Positions 1-13,750 of a stretch of 64,000 nt of DNA are shown here, in pieces. The translations under genes were made by a program, and so were the position numbers. The notes under the pieces are model-generated. The model had not been told where the DNA came from, did not search any database, and worked only from the letters and a program-made list of their open reading frames with translations. The DNA lies in contig JAHDYR010000008.1 in the NCBI GenBank assembly GCA_019828565.1, positions 124,001 to 188,000 on the forward strand, read 5' to 3'. Numbering within the stretch: position 1 is the first letter of the stretch; every line of letters starts with the position of its first letter. Origin of the DNA: Carpediemonas membranifera BICM. Taxonomy: Eukaryota; Protista; Fornicata.

Positions 1-1503
1 CAGGATCAAGAGCTCGGACCAATGGGAAGAGACTATAAGAGCATGCATGGGCGACCCAGTGAACAACAGGGGAGCAAAGGCAAGGGACAAAGTGTTCGGG
101 AACGGAGTGTGGAGCGAACTCCAGCGAACCCCATGGACAGAAATAGGCAACAGGACCTATGAGAGCCATCACAGAGCTGGCCCAAGGCGCTGACCTGAAG
201 AGAGAAATTAGCAGACTATGCCCCCTATGCTCGGAGGAGTCGGAGGTGAGCCTGTTCTACAGGATCATTAGGGAAAAGCCAGGACCAGCAAGGAAGCAGG
301 AAATGATCAGGGAGTGGGCAGAGGGCCAGAGGCTAGGATCGGCAGCGCACATAATCTGTGAATGCCCGGCAGTAGACAGGGGAGAAGCTTGGACAAAGCT
401 GTGGACAGCAGCGAAGCACAAAACTAAGGACTTGGAAGTAAGGCAGGGCCCCCAGGGCGAATGGTACCAGGAAAGACCCATCCTAGAATTACAGCAACTA
501 ATAATATGGGGCTCGGAGGACATTTGGGAAGGCCTCACGGCAGGACTACGGGAACTGGCAAAGGTTTACAACAGCTTCAAGGTGGAATAGAAGCATGTCA
601 TGAACCCCTGACTCCAGGACCGGGAAGGGATGGACAAGGAATCAGCCATGGACCACCCTCGCTGGTGCTAAGCTCCTGGGATCAGTGAGGAAAGGCCCCA
701 CGTATCCCGGTAGCCAGGAACCAAAGCAAGGGAAGGAACGACTGCAAGGAAATAACAGGAAGGACAGACCAGAAATAAGAAAGAAAGGACATGCGACAAG
801 GACAGAGCAAGGATAAGGTCAAGGAAATCCATATTCATATGGTTGCACCACTCGTTGGGACCCCAAGGAAACTGCAGGGACTGGCCACGGGGGTCGGAGG
901 GGCACAGGTGCCCCTGCCGCCCTTGTTAACGACATGGGAAACCAAGGACATGTAGTGCAAGCGAAATGTTGTAAGGGGTAACAGGACAACCAGGCCTAGT
1001 GCCTGGGGGTACACCACCCATGCCCTGACCCACGCCACCTAACCGGGGTAGACAGCATGGACTTAGTCACTTTCCCCGCCTTCGGGTAGGCTTCTTAACA
1101 GAGTCGAGGGGGCATGGAATTGGGGAACCGGACAGACGAGAGGGTGCCGTGGCTGAACGGCTCTGCAAGGACTGCAGGGAAGCAAGGAGTGTCATAGTCA
1201 AGGTTCTGCAGGACGATCCTGCCTGTCAATGCCCCGAGGACAGACCCCCAGGCTCCCCGGATAGTTGCCGGACTTTCAGGGAGACAGGAAAGCATATTTG
1301 CACGGAGATGGCCGCAGGGCCTCTGGGGCGATTGGAATCGGCTTTCCGCGGAGACAGTAGCACCGAAAGCCCAAGGCAAACGCTGCTGACCAGTTTGCCA
1401 CGGGAAATAGGCAGTACCCCGGGGCACTCAGCTCCAAGACAACGGGAAACAAGCTCAGTCCGGGGTCAGAATCCAAGCACCATAAATTTATTTATTATTA
1501 TTT
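1..1503 (+). mobile_element. 3' part of RT-less LINE-like element, copy 1 (continues off the left edge)
   Basis: Reverse complement of 3960-5463. ORF translations are identical, with one 1-bp indel near 781/4682. Ends in the T-rich tail ATTTATTATTATTT (1490-1503), joined sharply to YR-retrotransposon sequence at 1504. Confidence 0.9.
159..590 (+). CDS. LINE-type C-terminal zinc-knuckle protein (copy 1)
   Basis: LCPLC...AAHIICECP resembles the Cx2C...Hx3CP knuckle at the end of non-LTR ORF2 proteins. Identical to 4874-5305. Confidence 0.7.
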   Translation: MRAITELAQGADLKREISRLCPLCSEESEVSLFYRIIREKPGPARKQEMIREWAEGQRLGSAAHIICECPAVDRGEAWTKLWTAAKHKTKDLEVRQGPQGEWYQERPILELQQLIIWGSEDIWEGLTAGLRELAKVYNSFKVE

Positions 1504-1505
1504 CT

Positions 1506-3353
1506 TCACATCTCGCAGCAGATGCGTCGCCAGCTCAACAGCTGGCTAGCGCTGCTCAGAGATCGTCCATCCAGACCCTTCGCTCAGGCCAGGGCAGACT
1601 GGGAGATCAAGGACGAACTCCAGCTCTCGGTCGCATCCGACGCGTCCTCCTTCGCGTGGGGCGCCTGCCTATTCAACGGCGACCAGGGCCGCTCGGCTCA
1701 AGGCCGCTTTCCTCCCGAGTTCCGAGACTCTCATATCGGAGTCAAGGAGCTCTACGCGATTGGCCAGGCTATCAAGCTCACCCCAACCCAGCGCACCAGG
1801 ACCCAACTAGCTATCTTTTCGGACAACACCGCGGCCATCGCATGGGTCAACCGCCAGGGCTCCCCATGTCTCGCCGACACGGCCATTCGACTCCTGCAGG
1901 ATATCTTCACCACGGCGAACACGAAGAATGTCGATATTCACTGCTTCCATATCGCAGGGCACCTCAATGTCCAGGCGGACCGGCTGTCGAGATTCGCAAA
2001 GCTCGATTGGCACTCACCCCGCGAGGTACTCGAGACGATAATGGCCAAGTGGGGTCCGGCGGAGATAGACGTCACTGCATCTCCGGACAAGAAGCTCGCA
2101 CTGCCAGGATTCGTCAGGAAAGCTTGGTCCCTCGACGATCACGGCTTCCAGCGCTCCTGGACCGGCGCCAGGATCTATCTGGCTCCGCCGACAGCGCTCT
2201 TGGGAGCGGCACATCGTCGTCTGGAGAAGATTCGGACGCCTCAGACCCCGACTACGTCCCCTCGGACGTGGAGGTCAGCGGCAATACTCCTCTTCCCCGA
2301 TCTCAACTCACCCGAAGTCAGAGCGCTGAAACGGCTGTCCCAACACAAGATGTATCTCAGAGTCCACTCCTCGCACATGCTCAACACGGAGCTATCCTGG
2401 ACCGAGAGGCAAGGAAAGATCAGAATGATTGCGATGATCGTCAAGACCCGTTCGACGAACTCCTCCGCCACGACAGGCTATCTCACTTCCGAAACGAGTC
2501 ATCGCGCCGCTCAGCGGCTGGCTGGGTCTCTAAGTTCGTCCTATCGCGACAGGCAGCCCTCTCCGACGCCGAACAACTCAGAGCATTCCTCCTCGCCGAG
2601 GGCGAGACCACTGGCCCGCAGAGTATCCACAGAAAGGGCTACTGGATCTGTCAAGCGGCTCCACTCGTCTCCAACTGGCGACCTCCGCCAGAAGCCAGGC
2701 AGATCATCAAGAGTGCGGAGAACGTAGCATCTCTCGACGGCCTAACAGGAGGCGCACTACCGGTGACCAGAGCCCAGGTCCGCAAGGTCGTCGACAGGCG
2801 ACGCTCCTCACCGAAAGCGTTCCAGGTAGCGCTGTTCGCTGCACTTACATTCATCTCAGTCAGCCGGGGAGGCGAGATCTTCGGCCTGACGAGAGGCGAC
2901 ATCTCTTTCGATGAACAGGGCAACGCTATGCTCTGGTTCCCCCGCACCAAGACGGCCAAGGGCATCCATAAGCTTATTCCTAACAGGTCATGGGACCGCT
3001 TCAACCCGGCAAGAGCCCTCAAGGCCTGGGTCCCAACTGCGACGCGACACAATTCCGACTCGATCTGGCGCATGATCGGTCCATCGGGAGGTATATCACT
3101 CACGTGTCCACTTGCAGCGTCCACCCTCCGCACATGGATCCACAGCGCCTTCGGCCCGAGCGTTTCATGGCACTCCTTCCGCAAGGGGGCAGCTACTGAG
3201 CTGGCAGTGGCCAACACAAACACGGAGGTCCTCCTTTCAATGGGCACGTGGTCATCTACGAAGAGCATGCTGAGGTACATGGGTAACGGGGTACGCACCC
3301 ATCCAGGGGTCCAGGGTCACCTGGCCTCAATTCTACTACAACCACCACTCTAA
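1506..3353 (+). CDS. Tyrosine recombinase frame, copy 1
   Basis: SVSRGGE (R), RTKT (K), WHSFRKG (HxxR), MGTW...MLRY (W/Y). The ORF-track start at 1149 lies in the inserted element. Confidence 0.88.
   Translation, partial: SHLAADASPAQQLASAAQRSSIQTLRSGQGRLGDQGRTPALGRIRRVLLRVGRLPIQRRPGPLGSRPLSSRVPRLSYRSQGALRDWPGYQAHPNPAHQDPTSYLFGQHRGHRMGQPPGLPMSRRHGHSTPAGYLHHGEHEECRYSLLPYRRAPQCPGGPAVEIRKARLALTPRGTRDDNGQVGSGGDRRHCISGQEARTARIRQESLVPRRSRLPALLDRRQDLSGSADSALGSGTSSSGEDSDASDPDYVPSDVEVSGNTPLPRSQLTRSQSAETAVPTQDVSQSPLLAHAQHGAILDREARKDQNDCDDRQDPFDELLRHDRLSHFRNESSRRSAAGWVSKFVLSRQAALSDAEQLRAFLLAEGETTGPQSIHRKGYWICQAAPLVSNWRPPPEARQIIKSAENVASLDGLTGGALPVTRAQVRKVVDRRRSSPKAFQVALFAALTFISVSRGGEIFGLTRGDISFDEQGNAMLWFPRTKTAKGIHKLIPNRSWDRFNPARALKAWVPTATRHNSDSIWRMIGPSGGISLTCPLAASTLRTWIHSAFGPSVSWHSFRKGAATELAVANTNTEVLLSMGTWSSTKSMLRYMGNGVRTHPGVQGHLASILLQPPL
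1522..2727 (+). pseudogene. Truncated RNase H + methyltransferase-like part of the pol ORF (RT separated by the insertion)
   Basis: VASDASSFAWG, HIGVKELYAI, FSDNTAA, NVQADRLSR. Identical to the C-terminal 401 aa of 10974-13124. Confidence 0.85.
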
Positions 3354-3490
3354 ATCACGACGGGAGTCGTGGGGCAGTGACGATTAGCACGGTACCGACA
3401 TTCTTGGACGCGAACCCTCGAGGGGTTGGTCGGGGGGCCCACCTGCGTGCCTGTGGGCCAACCATTGTTAGCACGTTGCCGGCGGGATAT

Positions 3491-3536
3491 CCCCGTTGGT
3501 TAATGAAAAGAATGTCATGAGGCTAGGATAGCTAGC
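3491..3536 (+). repeat. Split direct repeat B (46 bp) of YR element copy 1
   Basis: CCCCGTTGGTTAATGAAAAGAATGTCATGAGGCTAGGATAGCTAGC, also at 13888-13933 and 14204-14249. Confidence 0.9.
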
Positions 3537-3697
3537 TGGCGCTACATCGTCAGTAAGGTTACCTCGGGTAACGGGCCCGGAGCGGAGGGCGATGCGATAG
3601 CCTCACTCCGGGCAAAAGGTGTTTCGCCGGTCAGGCGAGTCACGCAGTTTATGCGGACAGAATGGCGCAAGGTTCGGATCCGCCGGATCCGACGGCA
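3537..3697 (+). repeat. Split direct repeat A (~161 bp), shared by copy 1 (as A2) and copy 2 (as A1)
   Basis: Identical to 13934-14094. Contains the gag ATG at 3662. Confidence 0.8.
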
Positions 3698-3959
3698 ACA
3701 CGCTTAGATAAGCTAGAAGCTTCAATCAATTCCATGTCCGAAGCCCTAAACAGGCTTGCTCCTCCGCCTCCGCCAGAGAAAGAACCTGACGACGAAATGC
3801 TCGAAAGTTCCACCGTTGCTAGGTTCAATACCTCCGAATCGTTGGAGGAGGACACGATGGAGGACATAGATGCAACTCTGGCAGAGATGGACACCTTCTC
3901 GGAGTTACCAAGCAAGAGACCTCTCAAGGCAGAAGCGAAGTGGCTTCAACGCGTTGTCG
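3662..3959 (+). pseudogene. gag-like ORF, 5' half (interrupted)
   Basis: Removing 3960-10690 restores the frame ...KWLQRVV-VITSALPD..., giving ~184 aa. Its position upstream of RT is typical of DIRS gag. Confidence 0.75.
3943..3959 (+). repeat. Target-site duplication, left copy (17 bp GCTTCAACGCGTTGTCG)
   Basis: Exact repeat at 10674-10690 flanking the insertion. Confidence 0.92.
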
Positions 3960-4873
3960 AAAGAAAAAGAAAGAAATTTATGGTGCTTGGATTCTGACCC
4001 CGGACTGAGCTTGTTTCCCGTTGTCTTGGAGCTGAGTGCCCCGGGGTACTGCCTATTTCCCGTGGCAAACTGGTCAGCAGCGTTTGCCTTGGGCTTTCGG
4101 TGCTACTGTCTCCGCGGAAAGCCGATTCCAATCGCCCCAGAGGCCCTGCGGCCATCTCCGTGCAAATATGCTTTCCTGTCTCCCTGAAAGTCCGGCAACT
4201 ATCCGGGGAGCCTGGGGGTCTGTCCTCGGGGCATTGACAGGCAGGATCGTCCTGCAGAACCTTGACTATGACACTCCTTGCTTCCCTGCAGTCCTTGCAG
4301 AGCCGTTCAGCCACGGCACCCTCTCGTCTGTCCGGTTCCCCAATTCCATGCCCCCTCGACTCTGTTAAGAAGCCTACCCGAAGGCGGGGAAAGTGACTAA
4401 GTCCATGCTGTCTACCCCGGTTAGGTGGCGTGGGTCAGGGCATGGGTGGTGTACCCCCAGGCACTAGGCCTGGTTGTCCTGTTACCCCTTACAACATTTC
4501 GCTTGCACTACATGTCCTTGGTTTCCCATGTCGTTAACAAGGGCGGCAGGGGCACCTGTGCCCCTCCGACCCCCGTGGCCAGTCCCTGCAGTTTCCTTGG
4601 GGTCCCAACGAGTGGTGCAACCATATGAATATGGATTTCCTTGACCTTATCCTTGCTCTGTCCTTGTCGCATGTCCTTTCTTTTCTTATTTCTGGTCTGT
4701 CCTTCCTGTTATTTCCTTGCAGTCGTTCCTTCCCTTGCTTTGGTTCCTGGCTACCGGGATACGTGGGGCCTTTCCTCACTGATCCCAGGAGCTTAGCACC
4801 AGCGAGGGTGGTCCATGGCTGATTCCTTGTCCATCCCTTCCCGGTCCTGGAGTCAGGGGTTCATGACATGCTT

Positions 4874-5305
4874 CTATTCCACCTTGAAGCTGTTGTAAAC
4901 CTTTGCCAGTTCCCGTAGTCCTGCCGTGAGGCCTTCCCAAATGTCCTCCGAGCCCCATATTATTAGTTGCTGTAATTCTAGGATGGGTCTTTCCTGGTAC
5001 CATTCGCCCTGGGGGCCCTGCCTTACTTCCAAGTCCTTAGTTTTGTGCTTCGCTGCTGTCCACAGCTTTGTCCAAGCTTCTCCCCTGTCTACTGCCGGGC
5101 ATTCACAGATTATGTGCGCTGCCGATCCTAGCCTCTGGCCCTCTGCCCACTCCCTGATCATTTCCTGCTTCCTTGCTGGTCCTGGCTTTTCCCTAATGAT
5201 CCTGTAGAACAGGCTCACCTCCGACTCCTCCGAGCATAGGGGGCATAGTCTGCTAATTTCTCTCTTCAGGTCAGCGCCTTGGGCCAGCTCTGTGATGGCT
5301 CTCAT
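4874..5305 (-). CDS. LINE-type C-terminal zinc-knuckle protein (copy 2)
   Basis: CPLC...HIICECP. Overlaps the end of the APE ORF in the +1 frame. Confidence 0.7.
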   Translation of the reverse strand: MRAITELAQGADLKREISRLCPLCSEESEVSLFYRIIREKPGPARKQEMIREWAEGQRLGSAAHIICECPAVDRGEAWTKLWTAAKHKTKDLEVRQGPQGEWYQERPILELQQLIIWGSEDIWEGLTAGLRELAKVYNSFKVE

Positions 5306-6365
5306 AGGTCCTGTTGCCTATTTCTGTCCATGGGGTTCGCTGGAGTTCGCTCCACACTCCGTTCCCGAACACTTTGTCCCTTGCCTTTGCTCCCCTGTTG
5401 TTCACTGGGTCGCCCATGCATGCTCTTATAGTCTCTTCCCATTGGTCCGAGCTCTTGATCCTGTTCAGCTTTGAGACTGTGACTGGCCCCTCCTTCTTTT
5501 TCATGGGCCAGGTGTGCACCTCGGGTATGGCCAGAGCCACGTCTCGCTCACTTCTGCCATAGTACCGTTGTTCCTTCCATGCTAGTGTGATTCCATTGTG
5601 TGCTGAGCCCCATACCCCGACCTTCTGAGACTCTACCACCTCAATCTCCGCCCCCTGGATTCCTGGTGTTGTCACTGCAAAGTCCGGGGTTGATGTTCCT
5701 GATGTGAGTGTCCCAGACTTGGGTATGATGGCTTTGAGCCTGTGCTTCTCCATCATATCCTTCCACCGGGTGGATCTTTCCATCTGGCCTGGGTCGATGT
5801 TCCAGTCTCCCATAATTATGGCCTCCATGCTCCCTTTCATGTCCATGATCTTCTGTATAGTGTCCCTGAATCCATCCTTCTCCTGCTTGCTGTGGCCGGA
5901 TGGAGGGCCATACACGTTGATGACTAGTATGTCCCTGCCGGTTCTCATTATGCTGGCTTGCACTCTTCCCGATAGGCTGTCCGATATGCCGATGTCCCAC
6001 TTTGCAGTTGCGTGTGGGCTCACTATCGTGCCGATGCCTTCCCTTGTTCCCTTCCATCTTGGCGCAGGTTCGTCATTGCCTGCTATGCCTAGTTGTCGGT
6101 TGATGCGGTGCTGACTTTTGACATCCGCCTTTCGTTTTTCGTTGGCTAAGACCAGGTCCTCTTCCGTCTCCCTCCCTGCTAGTGCGTAGTCAAGGTCCAT
6201 GAAGCAATGAACCCTCGTATTCGCCGTTCTCCATGTCTCTTGTATGAGTACTGCCTCTATGTCCTTCAACCTTAGCTGAATCGCCGTTGCCATAGACGCC
6301 GTGAAGTCCTTTCCTCTTCCTATGTGTCCCTCTGTGTTCAGACTAAGTATCTTGTAGGTTACCAT
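5271..6365 (-). CDS. Apurinic/apyrimidinic-type (EEP) retroelement endonuclease
   Basis: ILSLNTEG, VLIQETW, VINVYGP, IIMGDWN, TPDFAV and GSAH (SDH-like) motifs in canonical order. Confidence 0.88.
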   Translation of the reverse strand: MVTYKILSLNTEGHIGRGKDFTASMATAIQLRLKDIEAVLIQETWRTANTRVHCFMDLDYALAGRETEEDLVLANEKRKADVKSQHRINRQLGIAGNDEPAPRWKGTREGIGTIVSPHATAKWDIGISDSLSGRVQASIMRTGRDILVINVYGPPSGHSKQEKDGFRDTIQKIMDMKGSMEAIIMGDWNIDPGQMERSTRWKDMMEKHRLKAIIPKSGTLTSGTSTPDFAVTTPGIQGAEIEVVESQKVGVWGSAHNGITLAWKEQRYYGRSERDVALAIPEVHTWPMKKKEGPVTVSKLNRIKSSDQWEETIRACMGDPVNNRGAKARDKVFGNGVWSELQRTPWTEIGNRTYESHHRAGPRR

Positions 6366-6696
6366 TGCCTTTGTCCTGTTTCCTTATCCTGCGAATTCCC
6401 AGAATTTGGGAGCCCCAGCTTCCCGCTCCTCTCCTGCTATCCTTGTCCTGACAAGGGGCCTAGATGCCGGTCTCGGTGACCCTTGTCAGGCCAACCTTGT
6501 TACCACCTGGTGACCTTCCATTCTTCGGGCAGGGTACTTAGGAGGGGGACGATATGACGTGACCCCCCTTTGGCTGCCGCTACAGCCTACCGGCAGTGCA
6601 TTTCAGCTAATGCCGGGCCCTGGGTGGGAGCCAGGGCTTGTGAATTATAAAGAAAATGTTGCTTGTTCCTTGAAAGAATACTGCTTTACCATGTCC

Positions 6697-7647
6697 TTAC
6701 TCCTCCTCCGTGGACTCCCCACTGCCGCTGCAGCTGTCCTCGGCCTGACTCACTTGCTGTCCTTGTAGACTCTGCATTACCGTGATGAACTGGGTCATCA
6801 GGTCCATGGGTGAGATCTGCTTGGCCTTCTTAGCCTTCTTGTGCTTGTGCCGGGGGATCGTGGGCTTCTCCTTGCTGGGCTTAGTCGCGACGCCGGAGAG
6901 CACCAACCTTCCGTGGCCTTGCTCTTGCATGAGTCGGGCAGCCTTGAGCGCTGAGATCTCTTGTTGCGCCTCTGCCAACTGCTTTCGGAGCCGCAGCTTC
7001 TCCGAGTCCATGCCGGTTGCCTGTCTGCTTCCAGACTCCCAGTCCATGTCCTCTTCGTGCCTGCTTCTCTTTCCGCTGTCCGAGTCCATGATCCTACTCG
7101 TGCTGCCCTCCTTGCGCTTGAGCGTCGTGGAGGAAGAGTGATCCTTGCTGTTGTCCATGCCTCCCTCTGAGCCTCTACCGGCCCAGGTGTTCCCGCTGAA
7201 CGAGCCTCTCATCTGCGTTCCCGTGTTGTCCTGTCTCTCCCTGTCGTCTCCTCCGTGGTTACGATCCGAGGTCCTGTTCATGTTACCAGCTCTGTCGCCG
7301 GTTCTGTCGTCAGCTCTGACACCAGCTCTACCGCCGGCTCCGTGTCCTACCCTTCTGTCCTCTTCCCTGTCTCCATGCTGGTCGTGATGTCCTTGATCCG
7401 CGTCCTGGCCGAAGTGCCTGCCCACCATCCTGGTGCTAATCCGCCTCGCCTTTTCCTCCAGGCCGTTGTCGAAGAACCTACTTTGGTATGGCTGTTCGGA
7501 CTTTCCGTCGATGGTGGGGACATACGTGATGCCTGGGACATTGACTGTGTTGGCTCTGGGCTCGTCCGGGATAGCTGCCGAGACTAGTCTGGCCCCTTCC
7601 TTGCGCATGCGGCTTAGGATGGTCCCAGCCTCGCTGACCCTGACCAT
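6697..7647 (-). CDS. ORF1b: low-complexity/coiled-coil basic protein, probably the C-terminus of ORF1
   Basis: Overlaps ORF1a in the +1 frame. One base fewer in the C5 run at 7649-7653 fuses the two (~1125 aa). Confidence 0.6.
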   Translation of the reverse strand: MVRVSEAGTILSRMRKEGARLVSAAIPDEPRANTVNVPGITYVPTIDGKSEQPYQSRFFDNGLEEKARRISTRMVGRHFGQDADQGHHDQHGDREEDRRVGHGAGGRAGVRADDRTGDRAGNMNRTSDRNHGGDDRERQDNTGTQMRGSFSGNTWAGRGSEGGMDNSKDHSSSTTLKRKEGSTSRIMDSDSGKRSRHEEDMDWESGSRQATGMDSEKLRLRKQLAEAQQEISALKAARLMQEQGHGRLVLSGVATKPSKEKPTIPRHKHKKAKKAKQISPMDLMTQFITVMQSLQGQQVSQAEDSCSGSGESTEEE

Positions 7648-10075
7648 GCCCCCAGTCTCTCGGGATGAAGCTCGCCCCTAGGGTGATCCTACCCCTGTTC
7701 CTGGGGGCCTTGACGTTGACTATGACCTTCTCATAGTCCCTGAGGCTCTCTGCTAGGTCGTCGCAGCCCCAGACTCCTTGATGAGCCGTAGCCTCCTTCG
7801 AGGGCCACCACTCGTATAGCATGGCCATGGTTATGATGTCCTCCTCCCTTGCTGCCCCTAGGCCCTTCCTGACGCGTACCATGCGGAGCTGGTTAGCCGT
7901 GGCTCTTCCATGATGGTCCATAGTGGGCTTCTCTCCAGCACTCCTTCGTTGTCCATGATTGTGAGGGGGGGCCAGTAAGATGCCCTTCATGCCCAACAGA
8001 ACCTCCCCGAACCCGAAGCCGATGCCGAAGCGGTGTCCGTTGTCCGGGACTACGAGGATCCTGTCGCCGACTTCCCTGCTGACGTCCCTTGCGTCCCCGA
8101 TCGGGTACGTGCCGAAGATCTCAAAGGTGTCCCTCCTTGTCGCGAATTCCGGGCCTCCCATGATATCCATGCCCGGCTCCGCCTTCCCGACTGCTTCCAT
8201 GGTCTTGTCGAGTGCCTTACCCATGTAGTGGTAGACGTCTGGGGTGCTCATCCTCTCCTTGCATAGGGCCCTGATCCTGGCTGTGAAGACTACTGTATCC
8301 GCCAACCCACAGTGGTAGCAACCCGCGGTGTGTCTGTGGTACGGACAGACTCCCTTGGGCTCGCTCCTGTTCTGCCATCCATTTGACCATGTTGTTACTG
8401 CTTCCAGGTAGTTGGCCTTGTCGAGGTTGTCCCTGAGGTTTTGGCCAGCCTCCTCCTTGCCGTTGTTCTCCAGGATCTCTGGTAGCTTCTTCTCGTCCAC
8501 CAGCCTAGCTTGGAAGAATTCCCTGGTTCCTTGCTCCAGTCCATTTGTGGGGTTCGTGAGGAGGAAGCTTTCCATCTCCACCCCCTTTGCATACATGATT
8601 ATCTTCCAGCCCTCCGACCTTTCGATCCTTGCCAGCTGAGCCGCCAGGCGGTTGGCCCAGTCCCTGAAAGTATGTATGTGCTTCTCATACTCGATCGGCG
8701 GCCGCCCCGTCCCGACCTCCACGAAGGTGGCCGGCGGCAGCCCCGTCACTGCCCATGCCGTGTACCTCGCTTGGTCCATGCTTGCTGCCGGTATGTCCTG
8801 GTAATACAGGCCATGCCCGTGTCCAAGAATGTCCCCAGTGCTGAGGTCAAAGAGTACGATCCCGCCCTCAACCGGGATGGCAGGGATCCCTGCCTTCTTG
8901 ACGCCAGGGTCTGCGCACTCGAAGTCGATGGCTCCGATCACCAGCCGTTTCTCCTTGTCCTTTCTAGGCATCCTCGGCGGCTGGCTGCTGACCTTGTTTG
9001 AGTCGACCTCCTCGTCCTGGTCGATCTTGCCTTGGTTGGCCCCGACCATGTCCTTGTTCACTTCCAGGAGGCTGTCGTCGAGGCTTCTTCTGCCGGGCAT
9101 GGTGGCCTGCTGGCGTCGTTCCTCCTTGTCCTTGACATGTTGCTCCTCGTCTCCGTCGATGACCGTGCTAGCGGACGACCTGTCCAGATCGGCATGTTCG
9201 TCCCTATTGCTGCGGACCGAGGTGGCCTTGAGCACTTCCAGCCTCACCTTCCGGAACGGCGGCTCGTTGCTAAGGGGGGTCTCCTCCCCTTCGCCCAGGA
9301 TATTGGTTCTGCCCTTCAGGTAGATCCCTGACTTGTTCCATGCTGCCTGCCATATGGCCGGGGCCTCCGGTGCCTGAAGCCTGAGGATGTCCCTAGCCTC
9401 CTCCATGAAGCGGCTGATGGACCATGCTGACGTGTCGCTTAGCTCTAGGATGACCCTGTACTTGCCGTCCTCTTGCTCGTAGGCCACTCTGGTGACCGGG
9501 CCTTGGTTTGCCGGATCCCATACCTTGTCGTAAGGCACGCCTTCTACGGCCTCGTCTCCATGAGCCCCTGATACCAGTATGAACGACCCTTCGGCCTTCT
9601 TGACGCTGTCCCTGTCTACATCCCATTCGATGGGCCCATCTTCCTTCGGCTTGAGGATCGCCGTCTCGATGTCCTTCTCAGATGGCCATCTTGCCATGCC
9701 AGTGAAGCCCGCTTTCAGCGTCTTGGGCTCCAGTGCCTGTGCCATGTCCTTTGCTTCCTCGTCTCTGGGGTTGAGCGCCTCTGTGAGCATGTAGAAAAGG
9801 TCGCGGAGGCCGTGGATGCCGCATGGGTTCCTGAGGATGATGTCCTTGTTGTCAGTGACGCCGGTTGCGAAGAGGATGCGTCTGGCGTTCATGATTACTT
9901 CCTTGCGTCCTTTGGAGTTCGCATTGAGCGACTTTCCTGTAAACTTGCCTGTTCTACGAAGAAGTAGAGTCCTTGAATCGTTCCTTTCAGCGAGGAAGCT
10001 GTCCAGTAGTTCCCTGATGTCCTCCCACTGCTTCTGCGTGGACTCCCTGATCCTTGTCGGTATTTCTACCTGCAT
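7478..10075 (-). CDS. ORF1a with a Maelstrom-like DEDDh nuclease domain (~8260-8950)
   Basis: AIDFE...IPVEGGIVLFDLSTGDI...H...TGLPP...AKGVEME...CPYH...HCGLAD, the pattern of protist MAEL domains. Confidence 0.72.
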   Translation of the reverse strand: MQVEIPTRIRESTQKQWEDIRELLDSFLAERNDSRTLLLRRTGKFTGKSLNANSKGRKEVIMNARRILFATGVTDNKDIILRNPCGIHGLRDLFYMLTEALNPRDEEAKDMAQALEPKTLKAGFTGMARWPSEKDIETAILKPKEDGPIEWDVDRDSVKKAEGSFILVSGAHGDEAVEGVPYDKVWDPANQGPVTRVAYEQEDGKYRVILELSDTSAWSISRFMEEARDILRLQAPEAPAIWQAAWNKSGIYLKGRTNILGEGEETPLSNEPPFRKVRLEVLKATSVRSNRDEHADLDRSSASTVIDGDEEQHVKDKEERRQQATMPGRRSLDDSLLEVNKDMVGANQGKIDQDEEVDSNKVSSQPPRMPRKDKEKRLVIGAIDFECADPGVKKAGIPAIPVEGGIVLFDLSTGDILGHGHGLYYQDIPAASMDQARYTAWAVTGLPPATFVEVGTGRPPIEYEKHIHTFRDWANRLAAQLARIERSEGWKIIMYAKGVEMESFLLTNPTNGLEQGTREFFQARLVDEKKLPEILENNGKEEAGQNLRDNLDKANYLEAVTTWSNGWQNRSEPKGVCPYHRHTAGCYHCGLADTVVFTARIRALCKERMSTPDVYHYMGKALDKTMEAVGKAEPGMDIMGGPEFATRRDTFEIFGTYPIGDARDVSREVGDRILVVPDNGHRFGIGFGFGEVLLGMKGILLAPPHNHGQRRSAGEKPTMDHHGRATANQLRMVRVRKGLGAAREEDIITMAMLYEWWPSKEATAHQGVWGCDDLAESLRDYEKVIVNVKAPRNRGRITLGASFIPRDWGHGQGQRGWDHPKPHAQGRGQTSLGSYPGRAQSQHSQCPRHHVCPHHRRKVRTAIPK

Positions 10076-10215
10076 TGTTGAGTGCAAAATTTCTCCCCTT
10101 TCCTAGTCCATAAACTGGGTCGGAATTTTTGGGTCCGAAAGTCGGGCCACATGTACATATCCGGGTGAGGTCTCCGTCCAGGCCTTCCAGTTTCTCCCAT
10201 TGTCCATGCTCCGTA

Positions 10216-10673
10216 CTATATAGGCCATTCTTTCCAAAAAGGCGCGGTCCTAAAAATGCGTCGCCCTTTTCTGAGTAGCGGGGCCTTTCTGTGTAGTTGT
10301 TGTTGCTTTGTTCGTAGTCTCCTTTTAGCCTCTATCGACGGCCCCTGTTTCCCTTTTGTGCTGCCCTTCCTTCCTTGTGGTCTTGACAAAACCATGTAGC
10401 CGCCGGTGCTAGCACTGGCCCTCGACGGTTGTTTTCCTTTTCCTTGTAAACATACGTTCCATGAAGACACTTTGATTCCTTGGTATGGGCGTGGAGCTCC
10501 CACTCGCGCCCAGCGGTATGCCCTGATAGCAACCCTTGAATGTTCAGACAGGAGGCCAAGGCCGCTCCTTCTGAGCTCCATGGGGCACTGCCCTATCCAT
10601 ATAGGCCAGGCCTGTTGGTCCTTGTCCATCCATGATCGAAGTGTTTCCACTTTGCTGAAATCATTGGTGAACT
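10216..10673 (-). CDS. Possible upstream ORF, open through the element's 5' junction (5'-truncated?)
   Basis: The frame is open from the TSD to 10216. No recognisable motif. Confidence 0.3.
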
Positions 10674-10690
10674 GCTTCAACGCGTTGTCG
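10674..10690 (+). repeat. Target-site duplication, right copy
   Basis: Identical to 3943-3959. Confidence 0.92.
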
Positions 10691-10947
10691 TGATCACTAG
10701 TGCTCTCCCAGATTCCGCGACGAAACAACGTCTTCTTCTCGAACTACAGGCTCGTAGAATGGTCCTAGACCTCAAAGATGATAACTGGTCCGATGCCACG
10801 ACCGAGCTGTTTCAGGACCTCTTCAACAGCACAGAAAGCAAGAGCAGCCGCACCATCGCTTACTGCGCAGCGAAAGCCCGCTCTAAGGGCAGGCGTAAGG
10901 ACACCAACGGTAACATGGGGGGGTTTCACAAGAAGAAGAGAACATAA
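10690..10947 (+). pseudogene. gag-like ORF, 3' half
   Basis: In frame with 3662-3958 across the TSD. Basic C-terminus. Confidence 0.75.
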
Positions 10948-13750
10948 CAACCTCTGTTCATCAATTCCCGTCGATGAACGCGAGGTGGTGGTTATGGGAA
11001 AGGCTCGGCGCCTCGGACGAGGTGGTCGGCTGGCTCCGTCACGGCGTACCTATCAAGCTAACAGGCACTCCCCCGCCACCCACGCCACAACGGCGCCTGG
11101 ACCCACGGCTCACCCCAAAGCTCGACGAGATGGTCCGACTCGGCGTGATCTCACCCTGTACCAGCGGGCAACTCCGGCACAGTGCCCCGCTCTTCGCGGT
11201 TGCAAAGGGCGAGCACGATGTCCGCCCGGTACACGACCTACGCGACCTCAACGCAATCACTGCGGAGACGCGGGTCTTCCGGCTCTTCGGCCTAAAACGA
11301 GCAGTGCGCAACCTCAAGCGCAACGACTTCATGCTCAAGATCGACTTAGCCTCCGGCTACCACCAGATGGGTGTGGCTCCGACCGACTCCACGCTACTGG
11401 GGATCGTCCTCCCGAACGGGCAGGCGTACAGATACAACACACTAGGGTTCGGCTGGACCGCTGCCCCGTTCGTGTTCCAGTCTACGTCCATCCAGCTAGC
11501 AAAGATACTCGCGAACCGCTTCAACGTGACAATAGCGGTGTACCTCGACGACTTTCTCATCTCACATCGGTCACGTCGCCACCTAGCAGACGCCGCTCCC
11601 CAAATAGTCGCGCTCATGAGGTCGCTGGGAGCTATCCCAGGGCTCAACAAGTGCATCCTAACTCCCACACAACGCCTGGAGTACCTAGGAGTCACCATCA
11701 ACACAGCCGCCGAGACACTGCAGATTTCCAAGGACAGAGCCGATCGCTATGCAACATCAATCGAGCAGGCCCTCAGGGCCGGCAGGATCGATGCAACCGA
11801 GTGGCAACGCCTACTAGGCCGCCTCTCGTTCTTCGCAAGTACGACACAGTTCGCCAGGCTCCAGCTCAGATCACTCCAGGCCCTACATCCCGCCCCGACG
11901 CTTCACATCTCGCAGCAGATGCGTCGCCAGCTCAACAGCTGGCTAGCGCTGCTCAGAGATCGTCCATCCAGACCCTTCGCTCAGGCCAGGGCAGACTGGG
12001 AGATCAAGGACGAACTCCAGCTCTCGGTCGCATCCGACGCGTCCTCCTTCGCGTGGGGCGCCTGCCTATTCAACGGCGACCAGGGCCGCTCGGCTCAAGG
12101 CCGCTTTCCTCCCGAGTTCCGAGACTCTCATATCGGAGTCAAGGAGCTCTACGCGATTGGCCAGGCTATCAAGCTCACCCCAACCCAGCGCACCAGGACC
12201 CAACTAGCTATCTTTTCGGACAACACCGCGGCCATCGCATGGGTCAACCGCCAGGGCTCCCCATGTCTCGCCGACACGGCCATTCGACTCCTGCAGGATA
12301 TCTTCACCACGGCGAACACGAAGAATGTCGATATTCACTGCTTCCATATCGCAGGGCACCTCAATGTCCAGGCGGACCGGCTGTCGAGATTCGCAAAGCT
12401 CGATTGGCACTCACCCCGCGAGGTACTCGAGACGATAATGGCCAAGTGGGGTCCGGCGGAGATAGACGTCACTGCATCTCCGGACAAGAAGCTCGCACTG
12501 CCAGGATTCGTCAGGAAAGCTTGGTCCCTCGACGATCACGGCTTCCAGCGCTCCTGGACCGGCGCCAGGATCTATCTGGCTCCGCCGACAGCGCTCTTGG
12601 GAGCGGCACATCGTCGTCTGGAGAAGATTCGGACGCCTCAGACCCCGACTACGTCCCCTCGGACGTGGAGGTCAGCGGCAATACTCCTCTTCCCCGATCT
12701 CAACTCACCCGAAGTCAGAGCGCTGAAACGGCTGTCCCAACACAAGATGTATCTCAGAGTCCACTCCTCGCACATGCTCAACACGGAGCTATCCTGGACC
12801 GAGAGGCAAGGAAAGATCAGAATGATTGCGATGATCGTCAAGACCCGTTCGACGAACTCCTCCGCCACGACAGGCTATCTCACTTCCGAAACGAGTCATC
12901 GCGCCGCTCAGCGGCTGGCTGGGTCTCTAAGTTCGTCCTATCGCGACAGGCAGCCCTCTCCGACGCCGAACAACTCAGAGCATTCCTCCTCGCCGAGGGC
13001 GAGACCACTGGCCCGCAGAGTATCCACAGAAAGGGCTACTGGATCTGTCAAGCGGCTCCACTCGTCTCCAACTGGCGACCTCCGCCAGAAGCCAGGCAGA
13101 TCATCAAGAGTGCGGAGAACGTAGCATCTCTCGACGGCCTAACAGGAGGCGCACTACCGGTGACCAGAGCCCAGGTCCGCAAGGTCGTCGACAGGCGACG
13201 CTCCTCACCGAAAGCGTTCCAGGTAGCGCTGTTCGCTGCACTTACATTCATCTCAGTCAGCCGGGGAGGCGAGATCTTCGGCCTGACGAGAGGCGACATC
13301 TCTTTCGATGAACAGGGCAACGCTATGCTCTGGTTCCCCCGCACCAAGACGGCCAAGGGCATCCATAAGCTTATTCCTAACAGGTCATGGGACCGCTTCA
13401 ACCCGGCAAGAGCCCTCAAGGCCTGGGTCCCAACTGCGACGCGACACAATTCCGACTCGATCTGGCGCATGATCGGTCCATCGGGAGGTATATCACTCAC
13501 GTGTCCACTTGCAGCGTCCACCCTCCGCACATGGATCCACAGCGCCTTCGGCCCGAGCGTTTCATGGCACTCCTTCCGCAAGGGGGCAGCTACTGAGCTG
13601 GCAGTGGCCAACACAAACACGGAGGTCCTCCTTTCAATGGGCACGTGGTCATCTACGAAGAGCATGCTGAGGTACATGGGTAACGGGGTACGCACCCATC
13701 CAGGGGTCCAGGGTCACCTGGCCTCAATTCTACTACAACCACCACTCTAA
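10778..13750 (+). CDS. Tyrosine recombinase (long frame overlapping the whole pol ORF)
   Basis: R-K-HxxR-W-Y catalytic set in the last ~200 aa. True start unknown. Confidence 0.92.
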   Translation: MITGPMPRPSCFRTSSTAQKARAAAPSLTAQRKPALRAGVRTPTVTWGGFTRRREHNNLCSSIPVDEREVVVMGKARRLGRGGRLAPSRRTYQANRHSPATHATTAPGPTAHPKARRDGPTRRDLTLYQRATPAQCPALRGCKGRARCPPGTRPTRPQRNHCGDAGLPALRPKTSSAQPQAQRLHAQDRLSLRLPPDGCGSDRLHATGDRPPERAGVQIQHTRVRLDRCPVRVPVYVHPASKDTREPLQRDNSGVPRRLSHLTSVTSPPSRRRSPNSRAHEVAGSYPRAQQVHPNSHTTPGVPRSHHQHSRRDTADFQGQSRSLCNINRAGPQGRQDRCNRVATPTRPPLVLRKYDTVRQAPAQITPGPTSRPDASHLAADASPAQQLASAAQRSSIQTLRSGQGRLGDQGRTPALGRIRRVLLRVGRLPIQRRPGPLGSRPLSSRVPRLSYRSQGALRDWPGYQAHPNPAHQDPTSYLFGQHRGHRMGQPPGLPMSRRHGHSTPAGYLHHGEHEECRYSLLPYRRAPQCPGGPAVEIRKARLALTPRGTRDDNGQVGSGGDRRHCISGQEARTARIRQESLVPRRSRLPALLDRRQDLSGSADSALGSGTSSSGEDSDASDPDYVPSDVEVSGNTPLPRSQLTRSQSAETAVPTQDVSQSPLLAHAQHGAILDREARKDQNDCDDRQDPFDELLRHDRLSHFRNESSRRSAAGWVSKFVLSRQAALSDAEQLRAFLLAEGETTGPQSIHRKGYWICQAAPLVSNWRPPPEARQIIKSAENVASLDGLTGGALPVTRAQVRKVVDRRRSSPKAFQVALFAALTFISVSRGGEIFGLTRGDISFDEQGNAMLWFPRTKTAKGIHKLIPNRSWDRFNPARALKAWVPTATRHNSDSIWRMIGPSGGISLTCPLAASTLRTWIHSAFGPSVSWHSFRKGAATELAVANTNTEVLLSMGTWSSTKSMLRYMGNGVRTHPGVQGHLASILLQPPL
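10974..13124 (+). CDS. Reverse transcriptase - RNase H - DNA adenine methyltransferase-like polyprotein (DIRS type)
   Basis: RT: LFAVAK, RPVHDLRDLN, KIDLASGYHQ, LGFGWTAAP, YLDD, LEYLG. RNase H: SDAS/KEL/SDN/NVQADRLSR. MT-like: DW...IDVTAS...SW...IYLAPP. Confidence 0.95.
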   Translation: MNARWWLWERLGASDEVVGWLRHGVPIKLTGTPPPPTPQRRLDPRLTPKLDEMVRLGVISPCTSGQLRHSAPLFAVAKGEHDVRPVHDLRDLNAITAETRVFRLFGLKRAVRNLKRNDFMLKIDLASGYHQMGVAPTDSTLLGIVLPNGQAYRYNTLGFGWTAAPFVFQSTSIQLAKILANRFNVTIAVYLDDFLISHRSRRHLADAAPQIVALMRSLGAIPGLNKCILTPTQRLEYLGVTINTAAETLQISKDRADRYATSIEQALRAGRIDATEWQRLLGRLSFFASTTQFARLQLRSLQALHPAPTLHISQQMRRQLNSWLALLRDRPSRPFAQARADWEIKDELQLSVASDASSFAWGACLFNGDQGRSAQGRFPPEFRDSHIGVKELYAIGQAIKLTPTQRTRTQLAIFSDNTAAIAWVNRQGSPCLADTAIRLLQDIFTTANTKNVDIHCFHIAGHLNVQADRLSRFAKLDWHSPREVLETIMAKWGPAEIDVTASPDKKLALPGFVRKAWSLDDHGFQRSWTGARIYLAPPTALLGAAHRRLEKIRTPQTPTTSPRTWRSAAILLFPDLNSPEVRALKRLSQHKMYLRVHSSHMLNTELSWTERQGKIRMIAMIVKTRSTNSSATTGYLTSETSHRAAQRLAGSLSSSYRDRQPSPTPNNSEHSSSPRARPLARRVSTERATGSVKRLHSSPTGDLRQKPGRSSRVRRT

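Follow-up and report, generated by a model that had tools for sequence, protein, structure and literature searches.

RT-less elements in Carpediemonas membranifera are very probably internally deleted, trans-mobilised copies of an active LINE with a Maelstrom-like domain in ORF1

The modules known from LINE ORF1 proteins are the RRM, CCHC, coiled coil, esterase and PHD. Mammalian HAL1 ('half-L1') elements, treated by Bao and Jurka in 2010, are said to be non-autonomous LINE derivatives that kept ORF1, lost the RT and were amplified in trans by full-length relatives. Exonucleases comparable with the one considered below are described from other settings: protist MAEL-domain exonucleases, such as Entamoeba EHI_192630, retain DEDD-type catalytic residues (PMC4408791, PMC2628886), and ORF3 of bdelloid LTR retrotransposons and of Athena/Terminon elements is a DEDDy exonuclease for which a part in RNA 3'-end processing has been proposed (PMC5408684). 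Our literature search found no LINE ORF1 with a DEDDh or Maelstrom-like nuclease.

Here we consider an insertion in a 64,000-nucleotide stretch of the C. membranifera genome (the window; contig JAHDYR010000008.1, positions 124,001 to 188,000). We think it very probable that window positions 3960-10674 hold an internally deleted copy of an active LINE, that the RT-less forms of this LINE spread in trans, and that its ORF1 is Maelstrom-like. The window copy is an ordinary deletion derivative of a full-length master, and its RT-less architecture is not new: an earlier note, made from the window alone, knew of no described element of this kind, but RT-less LINE derivatives keeping ORF1 were already known in HAL1. 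The notable feature of the family is instead its ORF1, with a Maelstrom-like domain in which putative catalytic and zinc residues are conserved.

The insertion is 6.7 kb long, lies on the minus strand and disrupts a tyrosine-recombinase (YR) retrotransposon. An identical 17-nt string stands on both sides of it, at 3943-3959 and 10674-10690, and a paralogous, uninterrupted YR element (L023:1-576) provides the exact empty site, where the flanks abut and the string is present once. Because all other copies begin with CAG, the 5' end of the window element is placed at 10674 and the duplication is read as 16 bp plus one ambiguous base, with its 3'-side copy (in element sense, and part of the disrupted YR element) at 3943-3959 and its 5'-side copy at 10675-10690. 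The string and the empty site thereby confirm the earlier description of an insert with a target-site duplication and a 3' tail, and refine the duplication to 16-17 bp. On the minus strand, the element opens with a 5' UTR (10076-10674), its first base the same in all copies with a full 5' end (CAGTTCACC...), and closes with a T/C-rich, (TTTC)n-like tail, not poly(A), at 3960-3976 (given on the coding strand), whose length and composition vary from copy to copy. Thirteen other copies have duplications of their own, of 12-15 bp, for a family range of 12-17 bp with the window copy included, and every copy with readable ends combines its own duplication with a common 5' start and a tail that varies. 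This inspection of ends took in three copies with the window's deletion junction and six of a second RT-less form. No LTRs or terminal inverted repeats were found in the element. Variable duplications, a tail and the lack of terminal repeats support integration by target-primed reverse transcription, as had been proposed.

A second copy lies at the edge of the window, on the plus strand. Its 3' part (1-1493) shares the deletion junction of the first copy, here at about 153-157, and has a tail rich in T and A (about 1480-1503). The 5' part falls outside the window, upstream of it, with the 5' end in L023 and a 12-bp duplication of its own; past element position 3265 come about 4 kb of sequence without a match.

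In the window copy, ORF2 survives as two pieces on the minus strand. The first, a truncated ORF2 at 5271-6365, consists of an APE endonuclease (about aa 1-262), a linker of about 90 aa, 11 out-of-frame codons and a stop. It matches Pfam PF14529 (E 3.3e-7, above the cut-off) and PF03372 (E 0.003); alignment A4 shows no variation at residues E43, D187, N189, D228 and H256, and SAH stands in place of SDH, as it does in L034 and L037, two related elements. The second piece, at 4874-5305, is a C-terminal remnant in a different frame from the APE ORF; it holds a CCHC knuckle of LINE type (CxxC...HxxxxC, ending H.I..CP), and in full-length copies the same stretch is the end of an RT-bearing ORF2. Alignment to those copies places the deletion junction at 5305-5308, where 1,951 bp and the whole RT were lost at a 2-nt (CC) microhomology; a Pfam search of the window copy for an RVT domain gave no match. 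Since the loss shifts the frame, the window ORF2 ends 11 codons past the junction and the knuckle is left as an untranslated, out-of-frame remnant that the APE protein of this copy does not include. An APE endonuclease and a knuckle without an RT are thus present as first reported, but the two stand in different frames and do not belong to one protein. The ORF map places an ORF1-ORF2 spacer at 6366-6696 (minus strand), and the ORF2 stop at 4874 is followed by some 0.9 kb of 3' UTR (3977-4873, minus strand) that is kept in every deletion class and is about 99% identical, in alignment, to that of full-length copies.

A DNA search of the 24-Mb C. membranifera genome itself returned numerous copies at 99-100% identity, in agreement with the recent mobility first claimed, and it recovered the RT-containing master that the earlier note had suggested looking for, a full-length element of 8,654 bp. 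Full-length copies L031-L033 have an extra 1.95 kb whose 763-aa ORF matches RVT_1 (E 1.4e-32; motif FVDD), and at least 33 copies in the genome have a complete RT segment located precisely between APE and knuckle; most of the copies bear an RT. The RT missing from the window copy is therefore present in at least 33 siblings, so that the family is a LINE and the window copy a defective member of it, and the proposal of a distinct RT-less architecture falls by the criterion of refutation that the earlier note had itself set. The family is an APE-type LINE, autonomous, abundant and recently active in C. membranifera. Its copies, 5.7-8.7 kb long, number at least about 60 and make up an estimated 2% or so of the genome, these copy counts being lower bounds, and 5'-truncation is rare among them. 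The analysis used natural copies only, with no consensus built and no frame repaired. A full-length copy starts with a 5' UTR of some 0.6 kb whose first base is fixed, followed by an ORF1 of about 1,120-1,170 aa, a 0.33-kb spacer and an ORF2 with APE, RT and CCHC knuckle; it finishes with about 0.9 kb of 3' UTR and a T/C-rich tail that is variable.

How did copies without an RT come to be numerous? The window junction, followed as an 80-nt string, occurs in five genome copies. A second RT-less form, with an in-frame deletion of 2,325 bp and the natural ORF2 stop kept, occurs in 16, and at least three further copies also lack the RT. The different breakpoints number at least five. Independent duplications were found in all copies checked of both forms (3/3 with the window junction, 6/6 of the second form), and a substitution in the 3' UTR marks all four readable window-junction copies and none of the 13 other copies compared. 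Such numbers, such independent duplications and the success of an in-frame form that retains its ORF2 stop are what might be expected if the RT-less elements were a distinct retroelement family, with an evolved ORF1/APE/knuckle architecture that parasitises an unrelated source of RT. This we regard as highly improbable, however, because RT-less copies match RT-bearing ones at 99-100% identity to either side of the junction, the breaks themselves are simple, show 1-2 nt of microhomology and fall at five or more positions, the knuckle of the window form is out of frame, and RT-bearing copies outnumber the others. Nor do we give more credence to the idea that the missing RT is an intron and the deletions are retrotransposed spliced transcripts, like spliced integrated L1. 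The breakpoints are indeed precise and recurrent, and introns exist in this genome, but none of the four junctions inspected has GT...AG or any other consistent dinucleotide pair, and the five classes would need five different donor and acceptor positions; splicing was rejected as the origin of the deletions. The one public run found, from 2016 (contigs, 200-500-nt fragments, not recorded as RNA), has part of the RT, and none of its sequences spans a deletion junction.

Simple deletion followed by mobilisation in trans thus remains our preferred reading. A progenitor would have lost 1,951 bp, and with it the whole RT, at the 2-nt microhomology, and the window copy would descend from it; the window form and four other RT-less forms would then have spread because RT-bearing siblings gave them ORF2 protein in trans. 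We infer this mobilisation, already suspected in the earlier note, from copy structure, that is, from junctions shared by 5 and by 16 copies and from the separate duplications. Several RT-less copies have an open ORF1, and the retention of ORF1 and the 3' UTR in all five forms suggests that its own RNA is what the ORF1 protein acts on. With all five deletion classes less than 1% diverged, ORF1 spared in each and the APE domain retained in most, the family offers an unusually clear case of deletion derivatives.

The parallel with HAL1 is close in function. In both, RT-less forms keep ORF1, and those of Carpediemonas have likewise been amplified as subfamilies with independent insertions. Unlike HAL1, however, they belong to another LINE lineage and another host, comprise several young deletion classes beside a master at more than 99% identity, and mostly still have the APE domain. 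The resemblance is drawn in function rather than in descent; the closest RTs found for the family are only 27-35% identical. With the two-ORF APE-type LINEs of the L1, CR1/L2, Jockey and I groups, the family shares the order ORF1 then ORF2 (APE-RT-CCHC), matches to PF14529 and RVT_1, duplications of variable length, a 3' tail and the absence of terminal repeats. It departs from them in its T/C-rich rather than poly(A) tail, in SAH rather than SDH in the APE, in the rarity of 5'-truncation, and in a very large ORF1 in which no RRM, esterase or PHD was matched.

In the window, ORF1 occupies 6697-10075 on the minus strand (about 1,125 aa from a conserved MQVEIP start), as read from the ORF map and homologues elsewhere. 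It is broken there into ORFs of 869 and 316 aa by 1-nt differences in homopolymer runs, and it is open over 1,167-1,176 aa in several other copies. The frameshifts among ORF1 copies are located in homopolymer runs, and some in the family may reflect true differences instead of errors in the assembly. Pfam returned nothing for one whole intact ORF1, a feature search of the Atlas with residues 690-930 gave no usable match, and the AF2 model of the N-terminal region (pLDDT 49.8) was unusable. Among 1.84 billion representatives, phmmer found only 13 matches, namely C. membranifera proteins, ORF1-like proteins of assembly GCA_002919055.1, and fragments. In that assembly, ORF1 homologues lie upstream of ORF2s with APE and RVT; the ORF1 fragments and paralogues found are annotated by NCBI as hypothetical proteins.

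The centre of ORF1 (8126-8974, minus strand) is predicted to be a Maelstrom-like DEDDh exonuclease domain, with putative catalytic residues D-x-E, E and H-x4-D and putative zinc ligands E and C-x2-H-x8-C. Maelstrom was the top match and the longest alignment in fold searches of both the PDB and the ESM Atlas, and the Foldseek score by itself is weak (E about 1e-3). None of the five putative catalytic and four putative zinc positions varies among six of the seven aligned ORF1s, which share only 17-50% identity, an alignment that takes in the ORF1-plus-APE/RT elements of GCA_002919055.1. The C-x2-H-x8-C-x3-D spacing is that of MAEL and is identical in Bombyx Mael (PMC4408791); the third acidic residue (ExoII) is E, not D. 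Sequence profiles were silent: Pfam PF13017 (Maelstrom) did not match the domain or one paralogue at E up to 10, PDB searches by phmmer and profile gave the domain no Maelstrom link, and the A1 profile found nothing outside Carpediemonas among 5.8 billion proteins. PF13017 also had no match genome-wide, a result that is uninformative since the model matched in none of 14 control genomes. Fold and motifs nonetheless point to a DEDDh/RNase H-like fold closest to MAEL, so that the earlier designation of the domain as Maelstrom-like holds on fold and on DEDDh/ECHC motifs though not on the Pfam model. In this family it is built into the ORF1 of the autonomous element and is conserved there.

With protist MAEL exonucleases and animal Maelstrom, the ORF1 domain shares the DEDDh/RNase H-like fold and, in its putative ECHC zinc motif, the C-x2-H-x8-C spacing, and with the protist enzymes also the putative DEDD-type catalytic residues. 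It differs from MAEL proteins in lacking detectable PF13017 similarity and an HMG box, in the E at ExoII, and in residing inside a retrotransposon ORF1 rather than a cellular gene. Bdelloid and Athena/Terminon ORF3 is a 3'-5' exonuclease of this superfamily that is likewise carried by retroelements, but it is DEDDy (RNase D-like) rather than DEDDh/MAEL-like, and it forms a separate ORF in LTR and Penelope-like elements rather than part of a LINE ORF1. The C-terminal exonuclease of the arenavirus (Lassa) nucleoprotein (NP) comes from an unrelated replicon and has a known role, the degradation of dsRNA for immune evasion. The C/H/C spacing of Lassa NP is longer than that of the Carpediemonas ORF1.

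We infer from the conserved putative residues that the domain would be an active, metal-dependent 3'-5' exoribonuclease within the ribonucleoprotein of the element. That LINE families of two genomes have retained these residues speaks for selection on an enzymatic function, whether in retrotransposition or in counter-defence. It is less likely, though it deserves serious consideration, that the domain only binds RNA, non-catalytic as in animal Maelstrom, or is a generic DEDDh exonuclease unrelated to Maelstrom; the invariant positions, the MAEL-type spacing and the agreement of two structure libraries on MAEL speak against both. For a catalytic ORF1, the most likely role would be in trimming or handling the 3' end of the element RNA, and the main alternative would be the destruction of dsRNA or small RNAs directed at the element; the putative activity is directly testable on recombinant protein. 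The label 'defence-type', attached to this nuclease in the earlier note, is an analogy with animal Maelstrom. A bolder reading, which we hold to be rather improbable, is that a LINE lineage of Carpediemonas-like protists carries an active Maelstrom-type exoribonuclease in its RNA-coating protein and uses it to degrade element-derived dsRNA or small RNAs against host silencing, as the arenavirus nucleoprotein does. If true, it would link the animal silencing factor Maelstrom to a nuclease family used by transposons themselves. The C. membranifera genome encodes two Piwi-domain proteins.

The insertion in the window is real. An identical 17-nt string lies on both sides of the LINE (window 3943-3959 and 10674-10690), which is on the minus strand, and because every other copy in the genome begins CAGTTCACC..., we place the 5' end of the window copy at 10674, giving a duplication of 16 bp plus one ambiguous base. 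At its 3' end, the coding strand finishes in a T/C-rich tail (3960-3976) without poly(A). The LINE disrupts a tyrosine-recombinase (YR) retrotransposon within its gag-like ORF; the YR ORFs match RVT_1 at E 2.8e-19 and give a weak Phage_integrase match (E 3e-4) that does not reach the Pfam cut-off. In a paralogous, uninterrupted YR copy in another extracted locus (L023:1-576), the flanks abut exactly and the duplicated string is present once; this empty site, together with the flanking repeats, bears out the earlier note's reading of an insertion with target-site duplication. The DIRS-like YR host (window 10691-13750 and 1500-3959) occurs in several near-identical copies on the contig, and both RT-less LINE copies of the window sit inside the YR element, inserted at two distinct positions and facing opposite ways.

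The minus-strand ORFs previously listed for this copy are reproduced, as is its missing RT: 869-aa and 316-aa ORFs that together make ORF1, a 364-aa APE ORF (Pfam PF14529 above cut-off, E 3.3e-7; also PF03372) and a 143-aa knuckle ORF (CxxC...HxxxxC), with no match to RT models in any ORF of the copy. In the APE, SAH stands in place of the SDH of most LINEs; since both related elements of a second NCBI assembly, GCA_002919055.1, have the same variant, it is a lineage trait, not damage. The absence of RT is not a trait of the family. A DNA search of the C. membranifera genome (24.24 Mb, 69 contigs) with the window element returned many copies at 99-100% identity, and in six of the first 24 the match ends at element position 5367, followed by divergence. 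Three of those six, extracted as L031-L033, are elements of 8,654-8,672 bp that align end to end with the window copy, with an additional 1.95 kb precisely where the match had ended, part of a 763-aa ORF with an RT (RVT_1 E 1.4e-32, FVDD motif) that continues into the same knuckle. Searching with the RT segment alone gave at least 33 complete and 7 partial copies, a lower bound, with 40 of 114 candidates scored. The full element has neither LTRs nor inverted repeats. The window copy is thus a deletion derivative of an ordinary ORF1/APE-RT-knuckle LINE, and the distinct RT-less architecture proposed in the earlier note gives way to RT-bearing siblings, the very finding it had named as telling against itself. 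Among RTs of the public protein collection, the nearest reach no more than 27-35% identity, and an RNase H domain, which this LINE lacks, is present in many of these. An independent 2016 public run, kept as contigs of unspecified library type, contains pieces of the element free of errors, part of the RT among them and none spanning a deletion junction.

The deletion itself explains the unusual layout. In L031 coordinates, 1,951 bp are absent between 5369 and 7321, with 2 nt of microhomology (CC). L032 and L033 show the true ORF2 frame, running from APE into RT without interruption; in the window copy the deletion shifts this frame, so that ORF2 ends 11 codons past the junction and the knuckle falls in a different frame. 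APE plus knuckle is therefore a breakpoint accident and not a designed protein, and we reject it as a single coding architecture. Splicing was considered as the origin of the deletions and is unlikely, as no GT...AG pair flanks the window junction or the three others inspected; the deletions likely arose by microhomology-mediated deletion or by template switching of the RT.

The window copy is also not alone, since at least five RT-less classes are present. Class A, to which it belongs (5369 to 7321 in full-length coordinates, with a frameshift), is seen in five copies, two on contig C9 and one each on C1, C65 and C19. Class B (5358 to 7683; 16 copies) loses 2,325 bp in frame, joining the APE linker to the final 23 ORF2 codons, and classes C (4954 to 7573; L016), D (4396 to 7337; L017), in which most of APE is removed, and E (5702 to 7699; L021) are each seen in one copy. 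Duplications of 12-17 bp, different for each copy, flank six class-B copies, the window's two class-A copies and the C65 copy, and a 3' UTR substitution is common to the four readable class-A copies and absent from 13 other copies compared. The separate duplications and the class-A-specific substitution indicate that the deleted forms were copied repeatedly after deletion, and since they have no RT of their own, we infer that they require the ORF2 protein of full-length siblings. The suggestion that these elements are non-autonomous and borrow an RT in trans is accordingly strengthened where copying is concerned, and the siblings would be the suppliers. ORF1 is retained entire in all five classes, as is the 3' UTR, which, with the loss of most of the APE in class D, fits, without proving, a need for the ORF1 protein in cis and recognition of the 3' UTR by the RT. 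Mammalian HAL1 is the closest described analogue, and the RT-less architecture amounts to a HAL1-like deletion derivative of an ordinary kind.

The second class-A copy of the window ends at window 1493, with its 5' end in L023 and its own 12-bp duplication; its match stops after element position 3265 and is followed by ~4 kb of unmatched sequence (L023:4765 onward, G000:C9:118026... in the genome), where another element has probably inserted, nested within this one. The 5' end is complete in most copies; in several the match is lost early on the 3' side (positions 3006-4180), the opposite of the 5' truncation usual in LINEs; nested insertions may lie behind some of these losses. In the class-A copy L003 (G000:C65:270567-277374), the last 183 bp are inverted and the duplicated target string lies beside the inverted piece, which may be a 3'-end rearrangement resembling twin priming. 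L002 (class A) and L006 (class B), at G000:C1:761289-779985, are ~7 kb apart in inverted orientation with an identical 5' flank and a matching duplication in the class-B copy only, an arrangement that suggests inverted duplication or recombination between elements.

We believe that what is new here is the presence in a LINE ORF1 of a Maelstrom-like, apparently catalytic nuclease, its catalysis being putative. The AlphaFold2 model of the central ORF1 domain (window 8126-8974; 12-sequence alignment) has pLDDT 84.8 and pTM 0.86, and Foldseek against the PDB returned only DEDDh exonucleases and Maelstrom (MAEL) domains, with weak E-values. The two top-scoring ESM Atlas matches are Maelstrom clusters with PF13017 (TM 0.59, 209-211 residues), and RNase_T-type clusters come lower (0.50-0.54, 180-191 residues); language-model features also indicate DEDDh exonucleases, including the arenavirus nucleoprotein C-terminus. 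In an alignment of seven full ORF1s (17-50% identity; numbering of the copy L007), E428 of the D-x-E motif, E445, and M543 and E544 at the ExoII position are invariant in all seven, as are C619, H622, H630, C631 and D635; the first D of D-x-E is Y in one paralogue only (P0110). The C-x2-H-x8-C-x3-D spacing is exactly that of Bombyx Mael C290/H293/C302/R306. The ECHC zinc site sets MAEL apart from other DEDD nucleases, exoribonuclease activity has been shown for an Entamoeba MAEL protein that has both motifs, and the same motif pair has been noted in Lassa NP (PMC4408791; see also PMC2628886). The Pfam Maelstrom model PF13017 has no match on the domain or across the genome, and profile searches with the ORF1-domain alignment found nothing in the PDB or in 5.8 billion proteins. 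The earlier assignment to Maelstrom therefore stands as to fold and motif residues and not as to the PF13017 profile, and we read the domain as a divergent, protist-type MAEL-like DEDDh member with catalytic residues kept. The papers searched (Repbase lay outside that search) hold no report of a MAEL or DEDDh domain in the ORF1 of a LINE, or any description of C. membranifera LINEs; the closest precedent is the DEDDy ORF3 found in bdelloid LTR and Athena elements.

Neither the whole of ORF1 nor its pieces match Pfam, and by sequence search its relatives are confined to C. membranifera and GCA_002919055.1. The former has at least two paralogous ORF1 families (P0110, P0001), 44-47% identical to this ORF1 and annotated as hypothetical proteins (G000:C26:1112596-1115112, C6:326994-328892, C1:1434148-1436061); the latter has four ORF1-like proteins of 1,129-1,250 aa, two of them directly 5' of an ORF2 with Exo_endo_phos and RVT_1. 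The domain is therefore an integral, conserved part of the lineage's ORF1 and not a captured passenger of one copy. Outside the nuclease, ORF1 comprises an N-terminal region of 330 aa and, beyond the nuclease, a conserved region followed by low-complexity RG/D-rich sequence and a likely coiled coil. Downstream of one related LINE, a gene with a weak Chromo domain match (L034:9824-10660, GCA_002919055.1) is probably part of another retroelement.

A general pathway can be proposed in which an APE nick would lead to integration by target-primed reverse transcription, full-length siblings would trans-complement the RT-less forms, the ORF1 protein would act in cis, and the MAEL-like domain would be an active 3'-5' exoribonuclease. 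The role that we favour and predict for the nuclease is handling of the element's own RNA: because there is no poly(A) tail, the nuclease might trim a read-through transcript to the T/C-rich end on which the RT primes, an idea also put forward for DEDDy ORFs (PMC5408684). The main alternative is counter-defence, the nuclease destroying dsRNA or small RNAs; the C. membranifera genome encodes two Piwi-domain proteins.

Copies are broken at differing places, and in an alignment of 18 copies (element positions 1-4300) the length differences are almost all of one base, within runs of G, C or A, without phylogenetic pattern. Such differences are typical of long-read assembly error, real slippage being also possible; indel errors at homopolymers are probably widespread in the assembly, where they may disrupt many gene models. 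With ORFs read from natural copies as they stand, without consensus or frame repair, ORF1 is open for 1,167-1,176 aa in several copies, and its conserved start is probably the MQVEIP methionine, giving about 1,125 aa.
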